64,000 nucleotides of DNA from Mantamonas sphyraenae STR306 (lineage: Eukaryota; Protista; CRuMs): the NCBI GenBank assembly GCA_026936335.1, contig JAPMXV010000046.1, positions 248,001 to 312,000 of the forward strand, given 5' to 3'. The notes beneath the pieces were generated by a model. That model saw nothing but the letters and a program-made list of their open reading frames with translations, had not been told where the DNA came from and did not search any database. Both the position numbers and the translations under genes were made by a program. Positions 1,523 through 42,849 of this stretch are shown here, piece after piece; within the stretch, counting starts at the first letter, position 1; each line of letters opens with the position of its first letter.

Positions 1523-4042
1523 TCAGCAAAAGCCGATGGCGTTGCCAACGGCGTTGAGGACGTGGCCAACGGGCGATGTGCCGTGGAGGACAATGGCCGC
1601 GCTGATGAGCTTGATCATCTGGTTTTCCAGATTGGCACGCTGATAGGCGTTGTTAAACTTGCAACTGGGAAGCACATCCAGGACGCTGGTGCTACCTGCG
1701 GTGCAAACGGGTTGGTTGCCGAGCATTCCGCCTGCAATGGCCAACAGGATGACACTCAGGAGCGTGGAGCAGCACATGCATCCGTAGCTGAACATGGTTG
1801 GCTCTTTGCCTCCCAGCGAGCAATGGGCGGCTGTCTGGACGCAGAATATGATCGAAGCAAACACAATGTGTGCGTACATGACGCCCTCGAGCAGATTGAC
1901 AACGGAGCCGTAGTGATCGGCGCACTTGCCAAACTGAGCTTGGATTTCGGGCCGCGCTTCGTTGGTCAGAGATGCCTTTGTGCCCTTGCAAGTGCCATCG
2001 TTGCCGTACTTGCAATCGCAGCTGGTCTTGTAGAAGGAGGCGGCGCAGGAGCACATGCGTGTGGCCACGGTGGAGCACGTCTCGGGTTGCGAGACACCGC
2101 ACGCAGCCGTTTTGCACGCAGACGAGTCGGAGTTGGACGCATTGCGCAAACACAGGCACATGTCTGTCATGGGAGGCGGACTGTGCACAGTGCTGGAGTT
2201 GCACACGTCAACCAGATAATCCTTCTGGAAAGCCGGCAAATCGCTGAACTTCTGCTGAAAGGTTTTCAGGTTGTTTTGGGCAGTCATCTGGCCGTCGACA
2301 GCCAAGGCCAGAACTACGCCACTGCACACGAGGTTGACAAGCACAACACAGACAATCAGAGGCATGGTGCTGCCCGAAGGCCCATCCATGAGCTGGTAGT
2401 CGCCGTACGAGCTCTTCCCTTCCTTTGCCTTGGCAATCTTGATGCACAGAGCACCTACGGCGGCGTTGACCACCATGAGAACGAGGGAAAGAACCATCTG
2501 CCAGGTCCAATCGATGGCGGCACCCTCCTTGCACTGCATGCGTTCGACCTCGCCCAATCCATCCACGAGCGTGAGCACGGAGCCGTCGCTGGCCAGAATT
2601 GCCGAGGCGATGTTGGGAGTGATGGATGGGGTTGGGTAAATGCCGCCTGAGTTGGGTGTGGGTGACGCAGAGGAGGACGGTTTGGGTGTGGGTGCCTCCA
2701 GGGTGTAGAGCAAGGAACCCGTGAGGAGATTGACCACATACAGCCGACTCGCATCGTCTTGGTTGCTGTTGATGCCCGAGCTCGAAGGGGTGGTCACCAT
2801 GTAGGCCTGGGTTTTGTCGACAAAGTCAAAGCCGCGGAAGTTGATGTCCGTGCTGGCGCTGAAAACCCCCGAGGAAAATGTGAGCTTGAGCGACTGGATC
2901 GACTTGCCCGTGTCCAGGGCAAAGACGTGCATCCAGGATTCGGTGCTGGTGGAGTAGGTGGAGTCGGAGGATGTCTTGACGTTCTTGGTCAGGGTGACGA
3001 CCACGGTGTTGTTGGCGTCGAGCACGTGCACAGAGTTCGGCAACGCATCCAGAGGAGCACGCCAGACAATTGACCCATCGTCGAGGCTGAGAGCCACGAG
3101 TTCGGGATCGTCGGCACTGTTGAGGTGCATGGGCACATAGGCCTGGTTGCGCTTCTCGACAACAACACCGCCAAACACGCCGGCGCCGCTAAAGGTGACG
3201 TTCCACAGACGGGTGCGCGTGTGCAAGTTGATGAGGTTGACTTCGTGCATGTCGGCATAGTTGGTTCCGCAGGAAACCACGCCGAAGGAGCGGGAGCAGG
3301 ATTTTGTGCTGACTGGCTGCAGTGCAAAGAGGGTGCCATTGCGACGGAAGAGCGAGGTGCGGGCCATGCCACGTACATCGATGTTGTTGGACGGGTGGTC
3401 AAACGCGATCGAGGGCTTGGTGGAGTTGTGGCGAGGCACACGAATGAGCATCCAGCTCGCGTGGTTTGTGTCGGCACGCCACGCGGAAATGTAGCTGTCG
3501 CCCAGCTCGGGGTCCATCACCACGTGTTCACTGTGCAGGTAGTTGGAGAAGGAGGGGAAAGCCTTCCGGGTCTTGTACGTCCAGGCTGCGGCGTTTGTTT
3601 GCGTGTCAAACGCAAGCAGCCAGTCGAGGTTCCCTGAGCCGGTGTCGGCGACAATGCCCAGCTTTGCATGCGGTGCTATCTGCATTTGGTATTCGTGTTG
3701 GAAGCTGCCGTGCCAGTACCGGATGTCCGAGTCGTCGGTGGGGAAAAGCTGGAAGCCAGCCTTGAAGAGAAGCTCCCCATTGGGGGTCAGAGAGTGACCC
3801 ACAATGCGGCCCTTCATGCCCAGCGACCACAAAGTCTCGTCTTCGTCCATCACCATGGTGACCATGTCCTTGGCAGCGCCCGGAGCAAACCATGAGTTGG
3901 GGCCGTCACATTTGTTTTTGGGACCCACGCTCGGTGTGAAATAGGACCATAAGGAATCGACACCGGGGCCAAGCCACTCTGCACGTGTGCCATGACACAA
4001 CAGGAGGGCGGCGATGAGGACAAAAACGACTGGGCGCGCCAT
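1523..4042 (-). CDS. Secreted-domain membrane protein: signal peptide, PQQ-like beta-propeller, S/T/P linker, about 4 TM helices with Cys-rich loop
   Basis: Intronless ORF. MARPVVFVLIAALLLCHG signal peptide; propeller-type motifs (LVALSLDDGSIVW, VFALDTGK, YVVNLLTGSLLY); hydrophobic helices flank a Cys-rich segment. Alternative upstream ATG at 4099. Confidence 0.7.
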   Translation of the reverse strand: MARPVVFVLIAALLLCHGTRAEWLGPGVDSLWSYFTPSVGPKNKCDGPNSWFAPGAAKDMVTMVMDEDETLWSLGMKGRIVGHSLTPNGELLFKAGFQLFPTDDSDIRYWHGSFQHEYQMQIAPHAKLGIVADTGSGNLDWLLAFDTQTNAAAWTYKTRKAFPSFSNYLHSEHVVMDPELGDSYISAWRADTNHASWMLIRVPRHNSTKPSIAFDHPSNNIDVRGMARTSLFRRNGTLFALQPVSTKSCSRSFGVVSCGTNYADMHEVNLINLHTRTRLWNVTFSGAGVFGGVVVEKRNQAYVPMHLNSADDPELVALSLDDGSIVWRAPLDALPNSVHVLDANNTVVVTLTKNVKTSSDSTYSTSTESWMHVFALDTGKSIQSLKLTFSSGVFSASTDINFRGFDFVDKTQAYMVTTPSSSGINSNQDDASRLYVVNLLTGSLLYTLEAPTPKPSSSASPTPNSGGIYPTPSITPNIASAILASDGSVLTLVDGLGEVERMQCKEGAAIDWTWQMVLSLVLMVVNAAVGALCIKIAKAKEGKSSYGDYQLMDGPSGSTMPLIVCVVLVNLVCSGVVLALAVDGQMTAQNNLKTFQQKFSDLPAFQKDYLVDVCNSSTVHSPPPMTDMCLCLRNASNSDSSACKTAACGVSQPETCSTVATRMCSCAASFYKTSCDCKYGNDGTCKGTKASLTNEARPEIQAQFGKCADHYGSVVNLLEGVMYAHIVFASIIFCVQTAAHCSLGGKEPTMFSYGCMCCSTLLSVILLAIAGGMLGNQPVCTAGSTSVLDVLPSCKFNNAYQRANLENQMIKLISAAIVLHGTSPVGHVLNAVGNAIGFC

Positions 4043-4080
4043 GGACCTGGAGAGGGCTTTTTGGCAGCGCGAGCGCCAGC

Positions 4081-4093: not shown

Positions 4094-4124
4094 CAGCATC
4101 AGTTCGGATCAGGCGACACGCACA

Positions 4125-6711
4125 ATGGACAAGGAGAGTCGCACGAGGCGCTTGATGCGCAAGGAGGACACGGTGGCCAAGTTTGTGCGGCAACCGCGAC
4201 CGCGGCTTCAGGGGACGTACAACCAGGTGAAGTGGCGCACTGTGGAGGACAACCAGCTGGAAACCAAGACGCGACAGCAACAGATCGACACGATGCGCAA
4301 CAAAAACAAGCGCAAGACAGGTCTGCGCAAGAAGATAAAGGCGCGAGAGCGCGAGGATGTGCTGGACCCACGCAGCGGCTCTGTGGAGAGCATCGAGAGC
4401 AGCGGACGAAGCGGTGTCGGGCAAGGACAGGTGAAAATGACCATTGTCGATGACGTGCGCGACGAAGCAGACGACGACGAGTGGCTGCCGAGCGAGTACA
4501 GGCAGCGGAGCGTACGCAGCAGCGCCGGCGACCAGGAACGCTTCATGCAGATGTTCTACGGATATGTGACACCGGAGCCCAACTCGGTATACTCCCAACC
4601 TGGCCGTAGGCCAGATACAGCCAGTAGTGGGCGTTCGTCGAGGTCGTTGATGAGGTAAGTGGCGGATGCAAAGCGGGGTGGTGACCGTTGCGCCAACGTT
4701 GCCCTTGCGGCCAGCCAGTGTGGCGTTGTGTGGACATGGAGAGGTGGTATGGGAATGCTGACACGTGGATTCTACCCATCTACACCCGTGTGTGTGAACC
4801 ACGTTGCACAGTCGAGAGAGCACGCGCAGCCGAGCATCGAGCAGACAAAGCGTGTTGTGGGAACGGGAAGCGTTGCAGGCGGCCGCAGAACAGCGATTGG
4901 CCTCGCTGCAAGACGACTTTTCGTTCATGGAGCCCGAAGAGCAGGACGAGTTGTTTGAAGCCATGTTTGGAGACCTGCTGCCGCAGCATCAGCGCAAGGT
5001 GAACGACGAGTTTTCGGTGCTTCAAAAGGTGGGCGGCAGTGGCAAGCGCAGGGGACGACCACGCTCGCGTCATCGTCCAACTCAGCAGCAGGAAGACCAA
5101 GAGCAGCTGCAACAGCAGCGTGAACAGCAGGAAGGAGGATCTGGGAGCAGCAGCCCGCCTGAGGAGCAAGCGGGCACTGGAAGGCCGTCTTCGTCGCGTC
5201 GCAGCAATCGAGCCACATCTGCACATCGCGTGCGCTTTGCAGACGCGACAACGGGGAACGCAGACGACGTGGTTGCGAGTAAGCAAGTCGGAGAGGCCGA
5301 GGGGACGGGAGCAGGCGGTGAGGACGGACCGAGCACGAACAGCACAGCAGCGACTGAAGAAAAGGAAGATGAGAGTCAGAAAGGGACGGGGGACAAGGGG
5401 ACAGAGGAAAGGGAGGAGCAGGCGGAGGAAGCGGAAGCGGGAGCGGAAGAGGAAGAAGAAGAGGAAGACGACACGGGAAGTGTGTTGGAGGTGGATGTGG
5501 GTGCAGCAGAAACCACAGACACATTCGGAAACAAGGAACACACACCACCAAAGAGCCCTCCGCGACGAAAGAACAGGTACGGTGCGACAGCTCGGTTTTA
5601 CAAACGGCGGAGCGAGATGGAGTTGCAGATCCCGGAGCGACTGCAGCAGGAGAGCCGGGAGCTTGGGGCTCAGTTTGAACAGATCCTGGCGGATGAGGGA
5701 CAGCGCCAGGGCGAATCGTCATCACTGGAGATGCACAAGCGTCTGATGAACCCGATCATTGTACGAGAGGCAAAGGACGTGCCGGAGGAGCTGCTGAGCG
5801 ATTCGGACTGGTCGTGGAGCGGAAGTGAAGAGGAGGAGGACATGGTCAACGGAGATTCAGAGGAAGCGCGTGCAAACAACAACGTGAGGCGCATCAGCCA
5901 GAGTATTGGACAGAGCATTGGGAAGCGGCAGGAGTTTTTCCGGACACGGATTACAGACAGCAACGCACAGGAGGTGGAGGTGGACCTGAGCGCAGCGTAC
6001 AGCCGAAGCTCGATGATGTACACAAAGCCGCCAGACAGGCGAGGGCAAAAGGTGCATCTGCAGGAGAAGCTGTTGCGCAAGGGGGATTCGCTGAACAGTT
6101 CGTTCCTGCAAGCCACAGCTCCTCGTTCGCCCAAGAAGCGCATGGAGTACGGGCGATGGTATGTGCCCGTGAAGTATTGGCGCCCTATGGAGCAGGGGGA
6201 GCCTGTGATCACACAACACACGCTGGAGGAGCTGCGACACAAGCGGGAGGAACGTGTGCAGCAGCTGCACGCGAAGCAGATGGCCCAGGCCGAGGCTGCA
6301 CGCGTGAAGAACCTGAACAAAGTGGATGGTATGGGTGGGCGGGGACGTACATCGTCCAGAGTGCGCACGGCCGGATCGTCGGGCAGGCTACCGTCAGCCG
6401 CGACCAGTGCGAGCAGCGACTTTTTCGAGGACGACGGACCGCAGATGGAGCTATCGCAGACGGAAAGGGAGCACATTCTGTCTACAGGCACGGATCCGAC
6501 ACAGGGCATGCTGGACGAGGACTCGGCAAGGCCGTTGGACCCAGAAACAACGTACGAACCCAACATGAGCGTCGTCAAGCGCGAACGCATCCAGAAGAAG
6601 TTTCAAGAGACGTATCGAACTCTGTATGCTGCCAAGGCGTTCATGAAGCACTTGGAAAAGGGGCACGAGCGCAAGCCGTATTTCTTGGACGAGTTGAAGA
6701 ACAATCAATGA
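4125..6711 (+). CDS. Low-complexity protein with FAM47-like C-terminal motifs; 2 exons, intron 4655-4811; start 4125 or 4041
   Basis: GTAAGT...CACAG intron joins ORFs 4014..4658 and 4804..6711 in frame (AG|T = Ser). C-terminal KRMEYGRWYVPVKYW and LYAAKAFMKHLEKGHERKPYFL resemble FAM47 YGAWYL..KLW and L.G..AFKDFI...G.R.P.FL. Confidence 0.6.
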
Positions 6712-9038
6712 GTGTCGCCCCCATCCCCATCTTTCCTCCTCCTCGCGCTCGCACGCTTCTTGCTCTCTTCAACGCTTTCAGCAATGTGGCGGGAGCGGAC
6801 GTGGCGATCAAGGGTTTCCTGCAGAGCAAACGGGGCGTGGTCGCAGAGGACACACTGGAAGCGGTCGTGCTTGTCGTGAACGTGGTCTGCGAGCTGCTTG
6901 CGCGATGGCCACGGACCCGCACGACACAAGGAGCAGGGGAACTTGGGCCTGCGCGTGATGGAAGAGCCACTGGACACAAAGTCTTCGTAGAGACTGGTGG
7001 ATGAGCTTCGTGTGGATGGCCTGGAGAGCTTCACGACGTCATCGTCGTCGTCGTCGTCAGAGTCGACGTTGTCGTCTCCCTCGCTGTCTGATTCCAGGTG
7101 GCGTCGGAGCACAGAGCGCTCTTGGATGTGAGTGTGCACGCGCTTGACGTGCTGTTGGTACAGTTCCTGGAAGCGAAAGGGAGCACGGTCGCATTGGAGG
7201 CACAACCACATGTCGTGTTTGCGGCGGTAGTGGGATTCCAGCGCATCCTTGCTGCTCGACGTGCTATACTGGCACTCGTTGCACGTCCACGATTGCTCGC
7301 GCGAGTCTCGGCTGTTGATGCTGCTGCGTTCGCTCTGCTGAGAATGACGCAGTCCGATATGTTGCGTCAGCGACTCGGCCAACAGAAATGGCGCACGGTC
7401 ACAGTGGGGACACTGGTGCATGCCATGCTTGCTCAGCACGTGCCTACTGTACGCATCCTTGTCCATGAACGAGCGCTCGCCACGGCAATGGTTGCACACA
7501 TATGCGGGAGCCCGGCCTGGCGACGTCGTCGACGAATGCGACGAGGGCGATGTCCCCGGGTCCGACTCCACAGCAGATACAGACACAGCGTCGGAGGATC
7601 GCCTTTGACTTTCGGGCGTGCGGTCGCGTGCATAGATGCGGGATAGCTCGCGACGAACGGTGGAGTGCACGTGTGCCTGATGCTCCTCCAGCGCATCCAT
7701 GGAGGTGAACCAGGCCTGGCACTCTGGACAGGGCATCATACGTGCGGCTGTGGCCATGCCGTCCCCTGCATTCATGGGCAGTGGGCTCATGGGCTCCATC
7801 ACACGAGTCGAGCTCATCGCCTGCATGGGTGACTGCGGCGACGCACCGCCATCCATGAAGCTAAACATTGGCGTCATGGGTGTCCCTGAGGGTGTGGACG
7901 AGCCTACGGTGCCGGCACTGTAAGCGCTGTTTGTGCTGCCTGCGCTACTCCTCCGTTCCAGCTCCAGCTTCTGCTCGCGGTTCTCGTCCACCAGCGACGC
8001 AAGCTTGTCCTCCAGCGCCATCTGGCGTTCCAACAGCCGCAACAGCAATGGACTGATCTGATCCTGCGAGGTACGCGCGTCTGCAGACGCCAGCGACGAA
8101 AGCGACGGGGACGGGGACAGTCCCCCTCCAAGTAGCTGCGCAGGCCCGTCCGAATCGGCGGGGGACGGTTGTGAGCCCATGCTGGCTGTGCTCGGTGACG
8201 AGGCACGCATGGAGGATGCCATCGTGTCAAAGTGTTGCGTGAGCATGGGGCTGAGGGGCGACAAGGGTGTCGAGGCCCTGTGATCAGCTGGCACAGGCGA
8301 CGTTGTGCTTGGGTCTACACCCGTGGTGAAGGTCGACGATAGCACTCCAGAGAGAGAAGACACGGAGGGCAGGGAGGCCGCCAAGCTGACGTCGACGCCA
8401 GCTGAGCTAAGGGTGGCGTTTGTGCGAGAGTGTCGCAGCTCGACGTGTGTTTCCAGAGCGGATTGTGAGGGCAGGCCCGAGAGGCCACACTGGGTGCAGT
8501 CAAACACAGAATGGACATTCTGTTTGTGGAGGCGCATGCTTTCCTCGTTGTCGGCGGCAAAGAGGCAGTCGACGTCGGGGCAACCGAGAAGCGCATGAAC
8601 ACGCAGATGGGCCACCAACTGCGACTTGACGTAGAAGGAGACGTCGCATTCGCTGCACCCAAACTTGTGATGATCTCGCAACAGATGCTCGGCCAGGTCA
8701 GCACGCGTGTTGCACAGCACTTCGTCGTCCTGACATTGAACCTGTGGACACACAAACTGCCCGTGTTCCTTGCGTGTGTGCTCGCGAAGACTTCCTTGCG
8801 TCTCACACAGCACGCCTGTGCATCGAGCACACATCCAAAGGCCGTGGTGCTGCCGCATGTGGCGTCGGAGCAGGCGAGCCGTGCCAAACGTCTCGTGGAC
8901 ACACAGCGAACACACGTGATCAGCCCTCGCCACGCCGTCCTCGTTGCCTTGTTGAACCCACACGTGGTTCTCCCCCCCACTGTCAATGGGATGTGGCGAT
9001 GATCCACCCTGCTGCGCGGGTGCAGCCAAGGTGGTCAT
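6705..9038 (-). CDS. Multi-C2H2 zinc finger protein
   Basis: More than a dozen CxxC...HxxxH units (e.g. CSECDVSFYVKSQLVAHLRVH) around a Ser/Pro-rich spacer with a coiled coil; first in-frame ATG at 9038. Confidence 0.85.
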   Translation of the reverse strand: MTTLAAPAQQGGSSPHPIDSGGENHVWVQQGNEDGVARADHVCSLCVHETFGTARLLRRHMRQHHGLWMCARCTGVLCETQGSLREHTRKEHGQFVCPQVQCQDDEVLCNTRADLAEHLLRDHHKFGCSECDVSFYVKSQLVAHLRVHALLGCPDVDCLFAADNEESMRLHKQNVHSVFDCTQCGLSGLPSQSALETHVELRHSRTNATLSSAGVDVSLAASLPSVSSLSGVLSSTFTTGVDPSTTSPVPADHRASTPLSPLSPMLTQHFDTMASSMRASSPSTASMGSQPSPADSDGPAQLLGGGLSPSPSLSSLASADARTSQDQISPLLLRLLERQMALEDKLASLVDENREQKLELERRSSAGSTNSAYSAGTVGSSTPSGTPMTPMFSFMDGGASPQSPMQAMSSTRVMEPMSPLPMNAGDGMATAARMMPCPECQAWFTSMDALEEHQAHVHSTVRRELSRIYARDRTPESQRRSSDAVSVSAVESDPGTSPSSHSSTTSPGRAPAYVCNHCRGERSFMDKDAYSRHVLSKHGMHQCPHCDRAPFLLAESLTQHIGLRHSQQSERSSINSRDSREQSWTCNECQYSTSSSKDALESHYRRKHDMWLCLQCDRAPFRFQELYQQHVKRVHTHIQERSVLRRHLESDSEGDDNVDSDDDDDDDVVKLSRPSTRSSSTSLYEDFVSSGSSITRRPKFPCSLCRAGPWPSRKQLADHVHDKHDRFQCVLCDHAPFALQETLDRHVRSRHIAESVEESKKRASARRRKDGDGGDTH

Positions 9039-12000
9039 GGTGGGTCTCGACACGGAAAAACGGGGAGTTGGGTTGGCCTCGCCGCAATGGTCCTGCTCAC
9101 ACGCTCACACACACACGCACGCACACACGACACACTCCCGTGCTTTCCCACAACAGTCGCTTTTCGACGCGTTTGAAGAATACGACGACAGCCCGTTTGA
9201 GTACGACACGTACGACATGGCCCCCGTGGAGGACATGGTACGACTCTGCGTTGGGCCTCCCCTCTGCCTGCTCGTTCCCGTTTTCAAGCACCTTTTGCAC
9301 CCACACACCACCCGCTGACCCCCACGGCCGTCCCTCTTACGTTGTGCATCGAATTACCCACCATCCCGTGTGCGCACACAGGTGGACACGGGGTATGTCA
9401 ACCTGTCCACGAGCGAGGAGCGGCAGCCGATCGTCAGCATGGAACTGGTCGACTACAACTTCCGCGACTGCAGACAGTGTGTCGTCTGCAACGACATCCT
9501 CCTTGTGGTCATCGGGTCCAACCGGCTGGGTCGCTCCGACATGAAAAAGAGCAACAAGATAACAGGTGCGTGCACGCAACCGGCAGCCGCCTCGTCCCCC
9601 CTCTGCTTCCCTCTTGCGTTCAGGGCCCAACCTCTTGTCCCACACACATACTGCGTGCACCTTGCCATTCCCATCAAGTGCACACACAACCGACCACTCG
9701 ACTGACACACGTCCCACTGTTTGCATATGTCTGTGTGTCCAGATATCCCGCTGGGCAAGCAGCAGGGCACCATTCACCGCATCTTTATGGACCCGACGGG
9801 CAACCACGCACTCGTCTCCTTCACCACGGGCGACAACTACTACCTTCACTCGGGCACAGACAAGCTCAAGGGCCTCTCCAAGCTGCGCGGCCATGTCATC
9901 GACAGCGTGGCGTGGGACCTGGACAACAACTCGGAGCTAACCACACGCAACATCCTCGTCGGCACCGTGCACGGTCAGCTGCTCGAGGTTCTCATCGAGA
10001 GCAAGGACAAGCACGTCAGCCATGTGTACAGCTTTGATGGCGAGTGTGCCATCACAGGCCTCTTTGTCGAACGCTTCCCGTCCGAGAACGACAAGTTCTT
10101 TTGTGTGTGCCACCACCGCCACTCGCATCTACGAATTCATCGGTGGCCCCTCCTTTGAGGCTCTGTTTTCCAGGTATCAGACAAACCCGCGCTTCCGCGA
10201 GCTTCCGGGGAGTGTCGAGCACCATGACCTCCACTTTTACCAAAAGTACGGCGGTCTCAGCAAGTCCTTTGCCTGGCTCACCGAACCGGGCATCTACAAC
10301 GGTGGAATGGTCTTTGGTTCCCAGGGTCCAGGCGACCTCGTCATGACCGACACCTCTCTGACCCCGTTTCACAAGCCCGTCGTCACGGACGACTCGTTTG
10401 GAGGCAGCAGCTCGGCCTCCTCTTCCCAGCACAACCGGCGTCGAAGCAGCAACAAGGGACGCGGCGACGTACGCAACGGTGCAGACGGAGACGACGAGGA
10501 CGACGACACGGCTCCCATCTCCATGGTGCTCCTGGAGTTTCACTACCTGGTGATGTTTGAGAACCGGCTGCAGGTGATCTCGCGCCTCAGCGAGCAGGTG
10601 GTGGAGGAGGAACGCTTCACATACGACCAACGCCTGGCCATGGGCCTGCCGTGCGCTTTGTGCTACGACCGCGTCAACAACACCTACTGGATGGCCACCC
10701 AAAAGATGCTCTTTGCACTGGTCATCACTGACGAGGACCGCAACGCATGGCAGCTCTTTCTGGACCAGGGACAATACGAAACCGCCTTGTCGTACACCAA
10801 GGATCCCATCCAACGCGACAAAGTCCTGTCTGTGCAGGCGGAAAAGTTCTTTGAGCAAGGCTCGTACGAATTGGCTGCCACCATCTATGCCAAGACGCAA
10901 AAGAGCTTCGAAGAGGTCACCCTCAAGTTTGTAGAGCGCAACGAGGTGGAGGCGCTCAAAACGTTCCTCCTCAACAAGCTGGACAACATCAAGCCCAACG
11001 AGAAGACTCAGCTCACCATTGTGTCCACCTGGCTCACAGAGATCTACCTGGACAAGATCAACTATTACATCGAAGAGACGTACGCCACAGAGGGAGACGA
11101 CACAGACACATCGTCATCCGCTTCATACGCCTCCAACAGCGTGGGCGGGGGCGCAACAGGAAACAACCGCACGGCGGTGGCGCAGCTCAAAGCCACGCGC
11201 GAAGAGTTTCGCCAGTTTCTGCTGGATGCAAAGCCCAACCTCAATCCCAAGACGACATACAACCTGATCTCCAGCCACGGCCAGGTGGAGGAGCTGCTGT
11301 ACTTTGCCCGGCTCACGGAAGACTACGACCGCGTCATCAACTACCACATGCTGCGTGGCGAGTACGACGACGTCCTGGATGTGCTCAACAAGCAGGAGTT
11401 TCCTGAGCGTTTCTACAAGTATTCGCCGGCGCTGATGAAGGTGGCGCCGTACAAAACGGTCAACGCGTTTATGCAAAAGGGAACGGCATTGGATCCGCGG
11501 CGGTTGATCCCTGCCCTCATGCACTACAAGGGCACAGACACGCTTGCGGAAGGGCCTGCGGAGAAAGCAAAACCAGGCCATCCGGTACCTGAAGCACCTG
11601 GTGCGCAACGGCAACGAAGACCCAGCCATCCACAACTACCTGCTGTCGCTGTATGTGCAGCACGACGACGAGCGTGCACTGCTTCTCTTTCTCAATGAAG
11701 CGGAGAAGAATGTGTGCTACGACGTCAAGTACGCGCTGCGGCTGTGCACGCGACACGGGCGGAGGCACGCGTGTGTGCTGATCTACGGCACGCTGGAAAT
11801 GTACCACGAGGCGGTGGAGATGGCCCTAGAGTTTGACGTGGATCTGGCCAAAGTGTATGCAGACAAGCCGCTGGAGTGGGAGGAACGCAAGGTGCTGTGG
11901 CTGCTCATTGCGAAGAAGGTGGTCACTGAGGACGAGCAGGACGGCCAGGAGGGCGACAACGACAGCGCACGTGCACACAGGACACATCAAAGCGTGCCAT

Positions 12001-12691
12001 CGACTTTCTGTCCGAGACCACCCTGTTGACCATCGAGGATGTGTTGCCTTTCTTCCCCAAGTTTGACCTCATCGACGATTTTCGCAACGTCATCTGCAAG
12101 TCCCTGGAGGACTACAACCGCCACATTCTGGACCTGACCGACGAGATGAAGCAGTCGACAGAGAGCGCAGACCTGATCCGCCAGGACATCCGCGAAACGC
12201 GAAAGCGCTACGGTTATGTGGAGGCAACGCAGCGGTGCAACGTGTGCGAGTACCCGCTGGCCGTGCGCTCTTTCTACGTGTTTCCCTGCCAGCACATGTT
12301 CCATGAGGACTGTCTGTTGCAGGAGCTCAAGGCCAACCAGACGCCGTCGCAGCGTGAACGCATCGAAATGCTGCAAAACAGGATCCACGCCCACGAAACA
12401 GGCGCTATCCAGCAGGAGGCACACCGTGAAAACGCTCTCGAGGGAGCTGTCGATGTGCTGGCGAGTGCCTTTGAAGGACTGCACATGCACGCCGGAGCAG
12501 CGTCCAAGACGGCGACGGCAAACGAGGCCAAGGCGACACAGCTAAGCGAGCTGGCACGCCTGCGTGCCGAGTTGGATGAGGCAGTGGCCTCCAAGTGTCT
12601 ATATTGCAGCGAGCTGATGGTACGTAGCATCGACCAGCCTCTGGTGGACATTTTCTCCGACGAGAACGGCTCGTGGCAACTGGACGCGTGA
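9037..12691 (+). CDS. VPS18: Vacuolar protein sorting 18 (HOPS/CORVET subunit); spliced, with three frame breaks
   Basis: ATG|intron|SLFDAFEEY...TGYVN resembles animal MASILDEY...SGYVN. Also IFMDPTGNHALVS, SFEEVTLKF, EDPAIHNYLLSLY, IEDVLPFFP and a C-terminal RING (CNVC...FYVFPCQHMFHEDC...CLYC). Introns about 9040-9156, 9238-9381, 9566-9743. Frame breaks near 10100, 11565, 11980. Confidence 0.92.
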
Positions 12692-16139: not shown

Positions 16140-18971
16140 TCACGCTGCAAGCATGACTTCGTATCCCCAAGTGACGTTGAGGGCACACCTGTATGGCAAG
16201 TGTGTGGATGCACCACGTGCATCGAGCACGGCCGTGTCCAGGGGCGTCCACTCGGGTCCGACAAAGATCCAATCGTGGCGCTGCGTGGGCTCGTTGGTGG
16301 CATCCGGACTCGGCGGAACGTACGTGAGACCCTTGTTGTTCCGCTGCCACGCTGTTTGGTTGCCCTGAGGATTGCCTGTGATAAAGGTGTCCTGCAAGCG
16401 GGGCGCAAAGAAGCGCTGATCGAGCATGCGTGTGTGTTCGTCGGAATTGGGAGCGGGCGCGCCGAAATCACCGGCAAACAGGGCAAACGCGTGGCCCTTC
16501 CACTGGGCCAGCAGGGCGTCGATTTGGGCCACGCGTTCGGTGGCATTGACGTCGAGCACACGCGCGTCCTCTGCATACAGGGCGGTGGTGATGAGCTTGA
16601 CCACATCCTCGGTGGTGCCAAACGTGACGTTGTAGTCGGGATAGGCCGTGTCTTGTGTGCGAGCCGCAGCCTCGGTCACGTTGCACGTCACGGGACTCAC
16701 GGTGTCGTTGTGGCAGGTGACGACGGTTCGATTGCGCAGGCCGATCTCGGCAGCGACCAGCGAATGGTGCGGCACCACCCCCTGGATGCCACTGGGCAGG
16801 TCTTGGAACTGTACATTGCGCAGTGGGTAGCGCGAGTACACCACGTGCACATGCTGACTGTTGGCCACCTGCACCGCCGCCGCATGCGGATACCGTCGGT
16901 GCAACTGCTGATGGGCCACCATCAGCTGGTCCACGCCGCCGTCCATCAGCCAACCGCGAGACACGCCCTGCAGCGCCAACACATCCGCTTGCACCTGAAG
17001 CGCAGCCACACTGGCCAGGCTCTGGTCCAACACGCTGCGCCCGCGTGCGTCGCGCCCGTGATTGATGTTGTATGTGGCCACTGTCATGGGCAACGACGGT
17101 GTGCTCGGTCCGCTGGGCACCACAGACAGCGAGGCGCCCAACGCAAGCATGACCACAAGCACGACAAGGAGAAGGAGGAGGATGAGCAGCAACGGCTGCC
17201 AGGCAACCCACGATCGCTTCTCATCCTGCACACGCGTCGCCTGTTCCGCCTCGTTGCGTTGCATCAGCTCGTCCGTGTGCTCGGTGGTCGGTTCCGGCAG
17301 CAAGTTGCACGTGTATGTGGACCACAGGGAGCAGGCGGTGAGGAGGAGGGCGGCGAGGGCCAAGAGGGTGCCCACCAACTCGCCCGAACGCATGTGCAGG
17401 TACACAAAAACACTGCCCAGTGCACATCCAACGGTCCACATGAGCATGGAAAGCACCATGCCAAGCCGACGATACTGCTGCGTGCCACTAAAGTGGATCA
17501 GGCGCGCTTCGTCGCCCACCACCCGCGAATAAATACCAAAGTCAATCTCCATGTCCGCCAAGGAGGAAGAGGACGAGTCGCCAGCCCCGCCTGCTTCAGC
17601 TTCCTCCTGCGTCTGTTTCCTCTTGCCCTTTTTGTCCTTGGGCATCTGGCTGACCCTTCGCTTGCCTCCCCTGCCCTTGGCGGCCACAGACGAGCTCTTG
17701 CGTTGCCTCCACTTGGGCAGCGAGTCCAACTTCATGACATAGCGGCCCTCGCTATCACCGGGGCGTGGGGAGCGTGGCCAGGACTCTCGGGAGCCACACA
17801 GAGCCACCACCAGCATGAAACTGCTCATCACATTGGCCAGGGGCAGGGACACAAGCGCCACCACGGGACTGGTGTTGTTGAACAGCACAGTAAGGAGGAA
17901 CAGGAGGCCAGGCAGAACGGGCCACCAGCAGGTGAGCGAAAAGAACTGCGGCTGCGGGATGGACGACGTGTTCAGGATGGCATACGAACTATCCGTCACA
18001 TAGTCGGGCTGGAGAAACTCGATGGCCTTGATGGCCACGGGCATGGCCAGGATGGCCAGGATGTTGGAGCCGATCATCAGCGCCTGCAGCTGGTACGAGT
18101 CGAGAATCGCCACAATGGTGGACACCTGACCGCTGTTCTGGAAGTACGCCAGTTGGATGTACAAATAGAAGCCCACGGCGAGGCTCTGGGCGGTGGACCA
18201 CACGTTGAGCTCGTGGGTGTCTGTGGAGGAGGGCGGCTCGGGCGCAAGCGAAACGGCCGGCCAGCGAATGCGCCACAGGGCCCATGTGTGGGCCAGGAGA
18301 AGCACCACAAGCAAGGTGTTGGCTGCCGTGAGGTAGGCGCTGCCCGGTTGGAACAAATCGTGCGAGTCGAGGAGGCCACGCAGCAGGGAGTCGAGGACAA
18401 CGCCGATGGCCAGCCCAAAGGTGAACCGTTGAATCATCAGGGCGCGTTTCTTCTTTGCTATCTCCAGCAGGAGGGGCAGGAGGAGGGTGGAGGCAAACAT
18501 GCCCATGAGACAGGCGACGAGTTCGACCACCACGTCGCCTGCAATCTGTTGGACGAGTCGCATGACGAGCTGGGTGGCGCCGAAGAAAGCAACGGCGCGA
18601 CGCGAGGAGACGCGGTACCGAGTCATGAGGACGGGTACGGGAAGCGCCAGGATAAACGGAAGGAGGACGAGAAAGAGGAGGGTGGACGCAGTGGCCTCGC
18701 GTGTGTTGCTCTCCTGTATCATGAGTCGCACGCCAAAGTGAAGGGCGGGCAAGAGGCCGCGAACAAAGTGGGCCAGCAGCATCACGCTGACGGCAGCACA
18801 CAGGCTCATGGCGCCCGGGTGCCTCCATCCGTGGAATAGCGTGCGCAGCATCCTGTCTTTGTGGCGGGGTTTGCGACTACTTTGTCGTGCGGTGTTGGAT
18901 TTGGGCGAGCTGCGCAGCGCAGCGCGCTGCGCCTGCCAAGCTTGCATATCCTGCAGTTCTCTTGCCACCAT
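16140..18971 (-). CDS. Polytopic membrane protein with C-terminal endonuclease/exonuclease/phosphatase (EEP)-like domain; CWH43/PGAP2IP-like architecture; catalytically degenerate
   Basis: Many hydrophobic helices, then MTVATYNINHG, ADVLALQGVSRGW, YSRYP, AGDFG, RHDWIF, ASTHLP; intronless. Start uncertain (18971, 18947 or 18851). Confidence 0.75.
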   Translation of the reverse strand: MVARELQDMQAWQAQRAALRSSPKSNTARQSSRKPRHKDRMLRTLFHGWRHPGAMSLCAAVSVMLLAHFVRGLLPALHFGVRLMIQESNTREATASTLLFLVLLPFILALPVPVLMTRYRVSSRRAVAFFGATQLVMRLVQQIAGDVVVELVACLMGMFASTLLLPLLLEIAKKKRALMIQRFTFGLAIGVVLDSLLRGLLDSHDLFQPGSAYLTAANTLLVVLLLAHTWALWRIRWPAVSLAPEPPSSTDTHELNVWSTAQSLAVGFYLYIQLAYFQNSGQVSTIVAILDSYQLQALMIGSNILAILAMPVAIKAIEFLQPDYVTDSSYAILNTSSIPQPQFFSLTCWWPVLPGLLFLLTVLFNNTSPVVALVSLPLANVMSSFMLVVALCGSRESWPRSPRPGDSEGRYVMKLDSLPKWRQRKSSSVAAKGRGGKRRVSQMPKDKKGKRKQTQEEAEAGGAGDSSSSSLADMEIDFGIYSRVVGDEARLIHFSGTQQYRRLGMVLSMLMWTVGCALGSVFVYLHMRSGELVGTLLALAALLLTACSLWSTYTCNLLPEPTTEHTDELMQRNEAEQATRVQDEKRSWVAWQPLLLILLLLLVVLVVMLALGASLSVVPSGPSTPSLPMTVATYNINHGRDARGRSVLDQSLASVAALQVQADVLALQGVSRGWLMDGGVDQLMVAHQQLHRRYPHAAAVQVANSQHVHVVYSRYPLRNVQFQDLPSGIQGVVPHHSLVAAEIGLRNRTVVTCHNDTVSPVTCNVTEAAARTQDTAYPDYNVTFGTTEDVVKLITTALYAEDARVLDVNATERVAQIDALLAQWKGHAFALFAGDFGAPAPNSDEHTRMLDQRFFAPRLQDTFITGNPQGNQTAWQRNNKGLTYVPPSPDATNEPTQRHDWIFVGPEWTPLDTAVLDARGASTHLPYRCALNVTWGYEVMLAA

Positions 18972-18987
18972 GAGTGCTTCGGCCACA

Positions 18988-20942: not shown

Positions 20943-22371
20943 GGTCGTCGCATCAGCCGTGGCCGTCGCTGAGGCGCCGAGACACACACAAAGACAAGAA
21001 AAACGCCGAAGCACCAATTCAACCCAAACGTCGCCCACCCACGACGCAAACGTGCCATCCAAATTGTCCACAGTCTTCCATTTGTTTGTTTGTTTTCCTT
21101 TGCAAAGCTCCACGCGCAGCAGCACAGACAGCTGGTGGTTGTGAGGCAAAAGGGGCAACAAAGTGCCCGCGTGCAACACACACCACCGCACACTGCCACA
21201 CGTCACTGCATACGTGCACACTCTGCTCCAGATCCCACCACACAGGGATGTCGAGTGATTTAGAAGTAGGTGTTGGGGCGGGCAGCCAGGAAGCGGTTGC
21301 GGCGGCTGCGGTCGGTCGAGCGCAGCACACGGTGGGGCAGAGGGAAGCGCAGCTTGCTGTTGAACAGCTTGGCATCCACACGGCTGGCCTCCAGCGGCTT
21401 CAGCTTGCGCGACGTGTTCAGCTTGTCCACGCGCAGGATCACAATGCTGTGCTTGCGAGCACGGTGGCGGCCAGCCAGCTCAGAGTACATCTGCTCAATG
21501 GCGCCGTTCACCGTGTTGTCGCGGTACTCCTTGTACATGTTGTGCGTGCCGCTGCGGCTGTTGTACTTGATCCACACGCCGTACGTGTGCACCTGGTCCG
21601 GTCGCTTCTCAAACAGCTCCTGCACAGCTGTGTGACCCCAAAAGAAACCCCGCTCGCTGTGTCAGCCGCATGCGCGTCCTCTCTCTCTCCCACACACCTT
21701 GCCTCCCCCTTCCCTCTATCCTCCCTCTCCTCCTTTCCCATCCTCGCCACACCCATCTCTATCCACCTGTCCAGCCCATCGACCCCCTGCGCGTCTCACT
21801 GCGCCCGTCTCTTGTCCCATGCCACCCGCTCCGCCTCGCCTGGGTTTTGCATGCGACCCGAAAATCACTCGCTCCCGCACGCCCGTTCACCTCCTTTTCG
21901 ACATCCCACCCCTCCCTCCCATCTGCACAGCCTTCCCTCATAGGCCACTTACCCAGGATCTCCGACGACGTCGACTTCATCTTGATCAGCTGGCGAGCAA
22001 TGTAGCGGAAGCGCGACTTGGCCTCCGTCTTGCTCTTGGCAAAGATCTTCATCCTGTACACCTCGGGGTACGGGTGCTTCTCATCCGGACGGCGGCGTCC
22101 AACCACAGAATATTGATGAACCTGCAGGTGTGGCGACGTGTGGTGAGCCCAATGTCAGCTTCAGTGCGTGTGTAGGGCGTGCCAAAGTGGCCCGGGCGGC
22201 CGAGAGGTGAATTTGCGCCTCCCTTTGCCCCGTCCGTGTGCACGACAGGTGGGTGGTGGGTGCACACGCAACGGAGCAAACGGCAGGTGGGCATGTGGGC
22301 ATTCGGTGGGTACGCCTCTGTGTGCATGTGCACCTACCATTGTTGAGTGTTTGAGTTGTTTGGCTGGCGGC
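20943..22371 (-). repeat. Copy A of 1.43-kb inverted duplication (partner 29951-31379)
   Basis: Reverse complement aligns nearly base for base with 29951-31379, including both introns and the 3' flank. Confidence 0.95.
21260..22340 (-). CDS. RPL18A: 60S ribosomal protein L18a (eL20), copy A; exon 1 coding part is ATG only
   Basis: M|VHQYSVVGRRRP...YRMKIFA...AKSRF...YGVWIKYNSRSGTHNMYKEYRD...RHRAR...RPNTYF. Confidence 0.95.
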
Positions 22372-29950: not shown

Positions 29951-31379
29951 GCCGCCAGCCAAACAACTCAAACACTCAACAATGGTAGGTGCACATGCAC
30001 GCAGAGGCGTACCCACCGAATGCCCACATGCCCACCTGCCGTTTGCTCCGTTGCGCGTGCACCCACCACCCACCTGTCGTGCACACGGACGGGGCAAAGG
30101 GAGGCACAAATTCACCTCCCAGCCGCCCGGGCCACCTTGGCACGCCCTACACACGCACTGAAGCTGACATTGGGCTCACCACACGTCGCCACACCTGCAG
30201 GTTCATCAATATTCTGTGGTTGGACGCCGCCGTCCGGATGAGAAGCACCCGTACCCCGAGGTGTACAGGATGAAGATCTTTGCCAAGAGCAAGACGGAGG
30301 CCAAGTCGCGCTTCCGCTACATTGCTCGCCAGCTGATCAAGATGAAGTCGACGTCGTCGGAGATCCTGGGTAAGTGGCCTATGAGGGAAGGCTGTGCAGA
30401 TGGGAGGGAGGGGTGGGATGTCGAAAAGGAGGTGAACGGGCGTGCGGGAGCGTGATTTTCGGGTCGCATGCAAAACCCAGGCGAGGCGGAGCGGGTGGCA
30501 GGGGACAAGAGACGGGCGCAGTGAGACGCGCAGGGGGTCGATGGGCTGGACAGGTGGATAGAGATGGGTGTGGCGAGGATGGGGAGGGGAGGAGAGGGAG
30601 GATAGAGGGAAGGGGGAGGCAAGGTGTGTGGGAGAGAGAGAGGACGCGCATGCGGCTGACACAGCGAGCGGGGTTTCTTTTGGGGTCACACAGCTGTGCA
30701 GGAGCTGTTTGAGAAGCGACCGGACCAGGTGCACACGTACGGCGTGTGGATCAAGTACAACAGCCGCAGCGGCACGCACAACATGTACAAGGAGTACCGC
30801 GACAACACGGTGAACGGCGCCATTGAGCAGATGTACTCTGAGCTGGCTGGCCGCCACCGTGCTCGCAAGCACAGCATTGTGATCCTGCGCGTGGACAAGC
30901 TGAACACGTCGCGCAAGCTGAAGCCGCTGGAGGCCAGCCGTGTGGATGCCAAGCTGTTCAACAGCAAGCTGCGCTTCCCTCTGCCCCACCGTGTGCTGCG
31001 CTCGACCGACCGCAGCCGCCGCAACCGCTTCCTGGCTGCCCGCCCCAACACCTACTTCTAAATCACTCGACATCCCTGTGTGGTGGGATCTGGAGCAGAG
31101 TGTGCACGTATGCAGTGACGTGTGGCAGTGTGCGGTGGGGTGTGTTGCACGCGGGCACTTTGTTGCCCCTTTTGCATCACAACCACCAGCTGTCTGTGCT
31201 GCTGCGCGTGGAGCTTTGCAAAGGAAAACAAACAAACAAATGGAAGACTGTGGACAATTTGGATGGCACGTTTGCGTCGTGGGTGGGCGACGTTCGGATT
31301 GAATTGTTGCCTCGGCGTTTTTCTTGTCTTTGTGTGTGTCTCCGGCGCCTCAGCGACGGCTACGGCTGATGCGACGACC
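29951..31379 (+). repeat. Copy B of 1.43-kb inverted duplication (partner 20943-22371)
   Basis: Near-identical to the reverse complement of 20943-22371; includes the last about 30 nt of THO2. Confidence 0.95.
29982..31061 (+). CDS. RPL18A: 60S ribosomal protein L18a (eL20), copy B; exons 29982-29984, 30201-30369, 30694-31061
   Basis: Same protein as copy A; GT-AG introns join the exons in frame. Confidence 0.95.
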
Positions 31380-39675: not shown

Positions 39676-40151
39676 ATGGACAGCACTTCTCCTCGCGTCA
39701 CCCAGACACATCTCTCCAAGTACATCGGCAAGCTCGTGCGTGTCGTGGGCGAGGTCGTGGACAACAGCACCGGCCACAGTGTGACGCTGAACACAGGCGA
39801 CGGCCAGGTGACGGTAAACATCACGAGCAGCACGGGGATCAGCTCAAAGTACATCGAGGTGATTGGAATGGTGGGCGAGGACCTGTCTGTGAAGGAGTCG
39901 CGGGTGGTGGACTTTGGCAACGAGTTTGGTGAGTCGAAAAGGGCGGGTTGGCGAGTGAGTGATCATCGTTGTCAGGAACCGTGTGTGTTTTGCAAGCACG
40001 GGAGGGACAGGGAGGGGAGTGGGGGGTACGGAGAGGGCAGGGATGGGTGGAAGGGACATTGGCGCTGACGCAGAGAGGGTGTTGGAACACAGAGCTGGAC
40101 ACATACTGCAAGGCGGTGGAGCTGTCGCAAGACTTCCCCGATCTGTTCTGA
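39676..40151 (+). CDS. RPA3: Replication protein A 14-kDa subunit, copy 1; 2 exons
   Basis: SPRVT...LSKYIGKLVRVVGEV...SKYIEVIGMV...DFGNEF|ELDTYCKAVELSQDFPDLF; OB-fold RPA14 pattern. Confidence 0.9.
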
Positions 40152-42373: not shown

Positions 42374-42849
42374 ATGGACAGCACTTCTCCTCGCGTCACC
42401 CAGGCACATCTCTCCAAGTACATCGGCAAGCTCGTGCGTGTCGTGGGCGAGGTCGTGGACAACAGCACCGGCCACAGCGTGACGCTGAACACAGGCGACG
42501 GCCAGGTGACGGTAAACATCACGAGCAGCACGGGGATCAACTCAAAGTACATCGAGGTGATTGGGATGGTGGGCGAGGACCTGTCTGTGAAGGAGTCGCG
42601 GGTGGTGGACTTTGGCAACGAGTTTGGTGAGTTGAAAAGGGAGGGTTGGCGAGTGAGTGATCATCGTTGTCAGGAACCGTGTGTGTTTTGCAGGCACGGG
42701 AGGGACAGGGAGGGGAGTGGGGGGTACGGAGAGGGCAGGGATGGGTGGAAGTGACATTGGCGCTGACGCAGAGAGGGTGCTGGAACACAGAGCTGGACAC
42801 ATACTGCAAGGCGGTGGAGCTGTCGCAAGACTTCCCCGATCTGTTCTGA
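42374..42849 (+). CDS. RPA3: Replication protein A 14-kDa subunit, copy 2
   Basis: Same gene structure; two amino-acid differences from copy 1 (QTHL/QAHL, GISS/GINS). Confidence 0.9.

Follow-up and report, generated by a model that had tools for sequence, protein, structure and literature searches.

In the genome of the protist Mantamonas sphyraenae STR306, two divergent genes, a minus-strand gene for a C2H2 zinc-finger protein and the plus-strand gene VPS18, probably both start on the same four bases, a CATG palindrome at 9036-9039, judging from open reading frames (ORFs), homology and splice signals. Positions are those of the window, the whole 64,000-nt stretch analysed here (C46:248001-312000, contig JAPMXV010000046.1; ~60% G+C), which belongs to a 78-contig assembly totalling 25,061,354 bases. 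The paper describing this FALCON assembly (25.06 Mb, 78 contigs, GC 59.19%, 9,416 predicted genes) makes no statement on introns, untranslated regions (UTRs) or gene overlap (PMC10492846). The palindrome reads C9036 A9037 T9038 G9039 and, as an earlier note on this DNA had claimed, direct reading of the sequence gives an ATG on both strands. The same holds for two further claims of that note: the plus-strand ATG directly abuts GTGGGT, a potential donor, and the minus-strand ATG is the only one in frame ahead of the first zinc finger.

A probable spliced-on initiator methionine in VPS18

Full-length VPS18 orthologues from many eukaryotic groups start with MSL[LFI][DE][DN][FWY]. In alignment A1, the exon beginning at 9157 (SLFDAFEEYDDS...) aligns from orthologue residue 2, and the bases before it form an acceptor, ACAACAG, that ends at 9156 and holds the sole AG in 9068-9156. 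As exon 2 encodes residue 2 onward and is immediately preceded by an acceptor, the initiator methionine must be supplied by an upstream exon whose last three bases are ATG. The earlier proposal that VPS18 requires a spliced-on ATG is therefore borne out by the conserved orthologue N-termini and the alignment of exon 2. Homology and splice signals together predict that intron 1 is a phase-0 intron between codons 1 and 2.

Between 8300 and 9156, an ATG is followed by GT or GC at two sites only, 9037 (117-nt intron) and 9087 (67-nt intron), and the two models give an identical VPS18 protein. The second site had been put forward before as the alternative, with a GTCCTG donor that lacks the +5 G. 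Its donor is indeed poor, but the ATG lies at 9087-9089 rather than 9086, giving the junction 9089^9157. Under every model the start codons are no more than 48 nt apart, which makes this a divergent pair with 5' ends less than 1 kb apart, and because the distance is only 48 nt even with ATG 9087, the very tight 5' arrangement holds either way. Coordinates of all features are given in Table 1.

Table 1 Features of the VPS18/zinc-finger locus, with the evidence for each.
Feature	Position	Strand	Evidence
CATG palindrome	9036..9039	both (ATG 9037-9039 plus, ATG 9038-9036 minus)	read from the sequence
Proposed VPS18 start codon, whole coding part of exon 1	9037..9039	plus	orthologue N-termini; one of two ATG+GT sites
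Proposed VPS18 intron 1, 117 nt	9040..9156	plus	donor GTGGGT, acceptor ACAACAG, branch-like CTCAC at 9096-9100 and 9104-9108
Rival start ATG, followed by GTCCTG (67-nt intron)	9087..9089	plus	donor score -4.79 / -3.92
VPS18 exon 2, residues 2-28, begins SLFDAFEEY	9157..9237	plus	alignment A1; codon score +14.6
VPS18 intron 2, donor GTACGA, acceptor CACAG	9238..9381	plus	alternative in-frame donor at 9226 possible
VPS18 exon 3, start of beta-propeller	9382..9565	plus	PF05131 profile positions 1-47
VPS18 intron 3	9566-9742	plus	
Remainder of VPS18 to stop	9743..12691	plus	PF05131, RING-like matches, homologues
C2H2 zinc-finger gene, single ORF, 777 codons plus stop	6705..9038	minus	ORF, Pfam

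The identity of VPS18 (Pep3), a vesicle-tethering protein and HOPS/CORVET core subunit, was established by searching its exons singly for homologues and domains. The large exon matches the Pep3/Vps18 beta-propeller (PF05131, E 2.3e-30, 106 bits, cut-off 23.1), and 89 homologues were found, the best of them 46% identical. The last exon reaches 28.6 bits against a cut-off of 30.3 for zf-RING_Vps41, with other RING models likewise just below their cut-offs. The reading frame is interrupted by three shifts without splice signals (at 10097-10106, 11568-11575 and about 11960-11995), two of which fall at T4 and A4 runs, and the protein is well conserved on either side. These are most simply explained as residual PacBio assembly indels, not as pseudogenisation.

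Choice between ATG 9037 and ATG 9087

Splice sites were scored with a model self-trained on 264 kb, made up of the window and 200 kb from contig C1 (C1:100001-300000) and comprising 78 introns, 51 of them high-confidence. The donor consensus is GT[AG]NGT, with a purine at +3 in 95%, G at +5 in 83% and T at +6 in 90%, and the acceptor consensus is CACAG. Two branch motifs are enriched in introns, CTGAC (9.8-fold) and CTCAC (4.5-fold); 44/51 high-confidence introns contain CTNAC, at 12-76 nt from the acceptor and with a minimum distance of 50 nt to the donor. High-confidence introns are 61-424 nt long, only one being shorter than 83 nt, with G enriched in their 5' parts (G 37%, C 24%) and C and A in their 3' parts.

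Under this model the donor at 9040 (GTGGGTCTC) scores +2.94 versus -4.79 for the donor at 9090 (GTCCTGCTC), and training on C1 only gives +2.77 and -3.92. The weakest homology-backed donor, GTACGA of VPS18 intron 2, scores -0.19 under the C1-only model. Donor 9040 is separated from the CTCAC motifs at 9096 and 9104 by 60 and 68 nt, donor 9090 by 10 and 18 nt. The composition of 9046-9089 equals that of intron 5' parts, and the 3' half of the 117-nt intron is rich in C and A. An argument in favour of ATG 9087, that the G-rich stretch 9040-9089 cannot be intron, was dropped because intron 5' parts are normally G-rich here.

Chance rates point the same way. An ATG+GT with a donor this good occurs at 1.1e-4 per nt, equating to 0.04 expected in the 40-400 nt upstream of the acceptor, whereas for an ATG+GT regardless of donor quality the expectation is 0.12 in 117 nt. 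By these rates ATG 9087 would be an unremarkable intronic decoy, and ATG 9037 a fairly unlikely one. Donor, intron length, composition and branch-point spacing thus all favour ATG 9037, a choice that the splice signals support as a prediction. Three further approaches were abandoned: a start-context matrix (just 10 unambiguous starts), an unbiased donor set built from unique candidates (numbers too small) and a screen for one-codon exons via ATG, donor and acceptor (too noisy).

The zinc-finger gene and its predicted start codon

The predicted start of the zinc-finger gene, ATG 9038-9036, has the context cccaccATGacc (acccaccATGa) and is the first ATG of the ORF 6705..9053; the protein would begin MTTLAAP. 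Pfam recognises zf-C2H2_4 in the protein (46.2 bits, cut-off 27), and several C-x2-C ... H-x3-5-H fingers are visible in the translation, the first near residue 44. ATG 9038 is the sole start that keeps this first finger, since the next in-frame methionine sits within it. The frame has the best codon score among the six frames, yet the score is weak, and a protein search found no homologues of the zinc-finger protein. Upstream of 9038, the minus strand has no ATG for 176 nt (P about 0.07), which is compatible with, but weak evidence for, a zinc-finger 5' UTR that crosses intron 1 of VPS18. At the other end of the gene, the convergent coding sequences (CDS) of a FAM47-like gene (plus, end 6711) and the zinc-finger gene (minus, end 6705) share 7 bases at 6705-6711, owing to the overlap of their stop codons.

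The two start sites are not independent in sequence. The GGTGGGT at donor 9040 is the reverse complement of the zinc-finger start context ACCCACC, and because an ACC-ATG context reverse-complements to CATGGT, the GT after the plus-strand ATG is automatic. Beyond this GT, the donor adds only the +5 G and +6 T, which pair with positions -6 (C) and -7 (A) of the zinc-finger start context.

Weighing the alternatives

Several observations weigh against a shared start. The splice model was self-trained from crude gene segments and probably overstates donor strictness: under donor-blind selection, 25/41 acceptor-anchored introns had a consensus-like in-frame donor (9 expected by chance). Donor 9040 itself ranks near the 10th percentile among training donors, its score is equalled or exceeded by 11-14% of sampled GT, and its GT comes free with the antisense ACC-ATG context. 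Its partner acceptor at 9156 has a weak score of 1.8, with AACAG rather than CACAG. The zinc-finger start follows from ORF logic only, for a gene with a weak codon score and no homologues, and a shared CATG would need VPS18 transcription to start within its neighbour's CDS. That last demand disappears if VPS18 starts at ATG 9087-9089, a one-codon exon followed by the 67-nt intron with donor GTCCTG, with the CATG a mere by-product of the ACC-ATG context. This ATG gives the same protein, its context includes a -3 purine and a +4 G, and the reverse complement of ACCATG would account for the ATG+GT at 9037. Real donors may also deviate from the consensus, as GTACGA of VPS18 intron 2 does, and the remaining 16/41 donor-blind introns lack a consensus-like donor. 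Its own donor, however, has neither the +3 purine nor the +5 G nor the +6 T, and 89-92% of sampled GT score at least equally. The 67-nt intron would be shorter than 50/51 high-confidence introns, and its sole CTNAC motifs would lie closer to the donor than the observed minimum of 50 nt. A start at ATG 9087 also demands that the upstream ATG with its good donor arose by chance, and we consider this alternative unlikely.

ATG 9037 may instead be the VPS18 start while the zinc-finger protein begins elsewhere, in an upstream coding exon, or is not an expressed protein gene at all, in which case the CATG would not be shared. Compatible with this are the lack of homologues, a codon score that is near zero overall and negative across the first 250 codons, a frame that stays open for 22 codons upstream of ATG 9038, and, immediately upstream on the minus strand, a run rich in pyrimidines that leads into an AG. 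An open frame of 799 codons is, however, far beyond chance at 60% GC, Pfam recognises the C2H2 fingers, and the context of ATG 9038 is good (A at -3, CC at -2/-1). The candidate upstream acceptor, TCGAG, departs from the CACAG consensus, and joining the minus-strand ATG+GTGGGT at 9364 to it would break the frame. We hold this reading to be quite improbable. Less credible still is an absence of intron 1, with translation running from ATG 9037 (or 8986) through 9040-9156 to add ~40 residues, although the CATG would then still be shared. The stretch 9037-9156 is stop-free and in frame with exon 2 (ORF 8986..9318), but the 39 in-frame codons of 9040-9156 have an intron-like codon score of -11.6 versus +14.6 for exon 2, making an unspliced N-terminal extension unlikely. 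This stretch encodes an HTHTHAHT run from a CA repeat, orthologues begin directly with MSL, and donor, branch point and acceptor are all there. The least probable reading, to which we give almost no credence, has VPS18 initiating at the internal ATG 9217 (MAPVEDM), in frame within exon 2, and takes the conserved-looking upstream stretch as 5' UTR. It would sacrifice SLFDAFEEYDDS, a segment that shares 53% identity with the first 45 residues of orthologue P0012 in A1 and fits the motif common to the orthologue N-termini examined, within an exon whose codon score is clearly positive.

A proposed mechanism for the overlapping starts

If both genes start on the CATG, VPS18 transcription would begin a few tens of bases left of 9037. 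Because the nearest upstream plus-strand ATG is at 8999, its start would fall within zinc-finger codons 1 to ~13. VPS18 exon 1 would end in AUG, its 5' UTR extending left within the zinc-finger CDS. The 117-nt intron would be excised via the CTCAC branch point and the AG at 9155-9156, joining AUG to the Ser2 codon UCG at 9157. Zinc-finger transcription would begin right of 9038, in the first intron of VPS18 or in its exon 2. This would make the 5' ends of the two pre-mRNAs cross, and overlap between the mature RNAs would be limited to the VPS18 5' UTR and the CATG; the start-codon intron would give non-coding room to the 5' UTR of the partner. We infer from the sequence that the VPS18 start may thus lie in the zinc-finger CDS, and that of the zinc-finger gene in VPS18 intron 1.

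Occurrence of similar arrangements in the genome

The earlier note had also suggested a recurring architecture of interlocked bidirectional genes, with weaker versions at 4040 and 18969. This was not supported, as CATG pairs occurred at a chance-like rate and both sites have ordinary alternative ATGs. At 4040-4043, the CATG supplies an in-frame ATG on both strands, the minus-strand ATG 4042 opening a signal-peptide-like MARPVVFVLIAALLLC, and there are other in-frame ATGs at 4014 and 4126 for the plus gene and at 4099 for the minus ORF. At 18969-18972, where the CATG likewise gives an in-frame ATG on both strands, the plus ATG lies in gccaccATGa, and eight codons downstream the minus ORF offers another in-frame ATG. 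In a crude survey, a CATG was in frame in both ORFs for 6/25 divergent pairs. By our own rough estimate this is about the chance rate, given that 39% of ATG have C at -1, multiplied by one third for being in frame and by the probability that the frame is open, and counting both genes of a pair.

No compelling case of a shared CATG was found in the independent 200 kb of C1. The CATG at C1:159127-159130 coincides with the minus-strand start of a ubiquitin-like protein (MQIFV) and with an ATG that lies upstream and in frame in a divergent CBS-like gene; this apparent shared start calls for no special explanation, as a more ordinary ATG for the CBS-like gene lies 58 nt downstream. Across the genome, the double-donor palindrome occurred five times compared with once for the control, and the copy that was inspected, at C1:177230, looks accidental. 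A genome search for the spaced double one-codon-exon pattern gave 0 matches, and in the 264 kb one double one-codon-exon pair was counted and none was convincing. Elsewhere, the CATG at L025:551-554 (C59, about 270202-270205) is in frame with both a plus-strand AP5M1-like ORF, which has a mu-homology domain downstream, and a divergent minus-strand ORF (MEFGTAQ). Pfam and PDB sequence searches with both N-termini of this pair gave no match. A TMEM135 family search was likewise negative.

One-codon first exons themselves are present in this genome. RPL18A has one, as previously claimed, with its ATG at 29982-29984 on the plus strand, donor GTAGGT and an intron running to 30200. The further claim that GTGGGT serves as a donor twice in THO2 was left unconfirmed: four GTGGGT lie inside long THO2 ORFs, none of them shown as a donor. 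RPL18A is present in two inverted copies, 21263-22085 (minus) and 30237-31058 (plus), with identical exon codon scores and a 324/325-nt intron whose sampled ends (first 60 bases, last 45 bases) match. Near-identical exon-intron copies with the same 164-nt intron were also observed at 39868-40092 and 42566-42790, which suggests a recent local duplication.

It is unlikely that M. sphyraenae routinely interlocks divergent genes, with each transcription start inside the transcribed region of its partner and start-codon introns or N-terminal CDS housing the partner's 5' UTR and promoter. If it did, a shared CATG would be the limit of compaction, and the genome-wide distribution of divergent ATG-ATG distances would have a spike at -2. 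A single locus is a curiosity, which is plausibly what the shared CATG is, and would gain importance only if the pattern were genome-wide.

Relation to known gene arrangements

A shared start at this locus would mean a eukaryotic gene pair without any intergenic DNA, both promoters lying inside transcribed, partly coding sequence, and a seven-base stretch that doubles as translation start context and 5' splice site. It would offer a natural test case for promoters in compact genomes, for the tolerance of crossing divergent transcription and for the reason behind start-codon introns. Gene predictors that bar overlaps or ignore one-codon exons would mis-start VPS18.

Start-codon introns are phase-0 introns between codons 1 and 2, enriched in short, lysine-rich, conserved (e.g. 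ribosomal) proteins (Nielsen and Wernersson 2006, PMC1626468). The predicted VPS18 intron resembles them in lying directly after the ATG, so that the first coding exon is the ATG alone, and RPL18A, also in this window, is a textbook case that fits the host-protein type. Unlike the published hosts, VPS18 has ~1000 residues and is not lysine-rich, and its ATG would overlap the start codon of a neighbour. Head-to-head pairs with bidirectional promoters are defined by transcription starts on opposite strands less than 1 kb apart (e.g. PMC7817982 and PMC1853124). The zinc-finger/VPS18 pair is likewise divergent, with predicted 5' ends a few tens of bases apart. Typical head-to-head pairs, however, have their promoter between back-to-back starts, whereas here the coding starts would overlap by two bases, which leaves no intergenic DNA and would force the transcripts to cross. 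In prokaryotes and viruses, adjacent genes on the same strand within operons overlap their start and stop codons (ATGA, TAATG). The CATG is comparable in that neighbours would share the bases of a boundary codon, the limit of compaction without double coding, but it differs in joining a divergent eukaryotic pair that would need two promoters and a spliceosomal intron. Start-codon introns and head-to-head pairs are each known separately; what would be new is their combination with a palindromic overlap of start codons and a donor that is at the same time the start context of the neighbouring gene.

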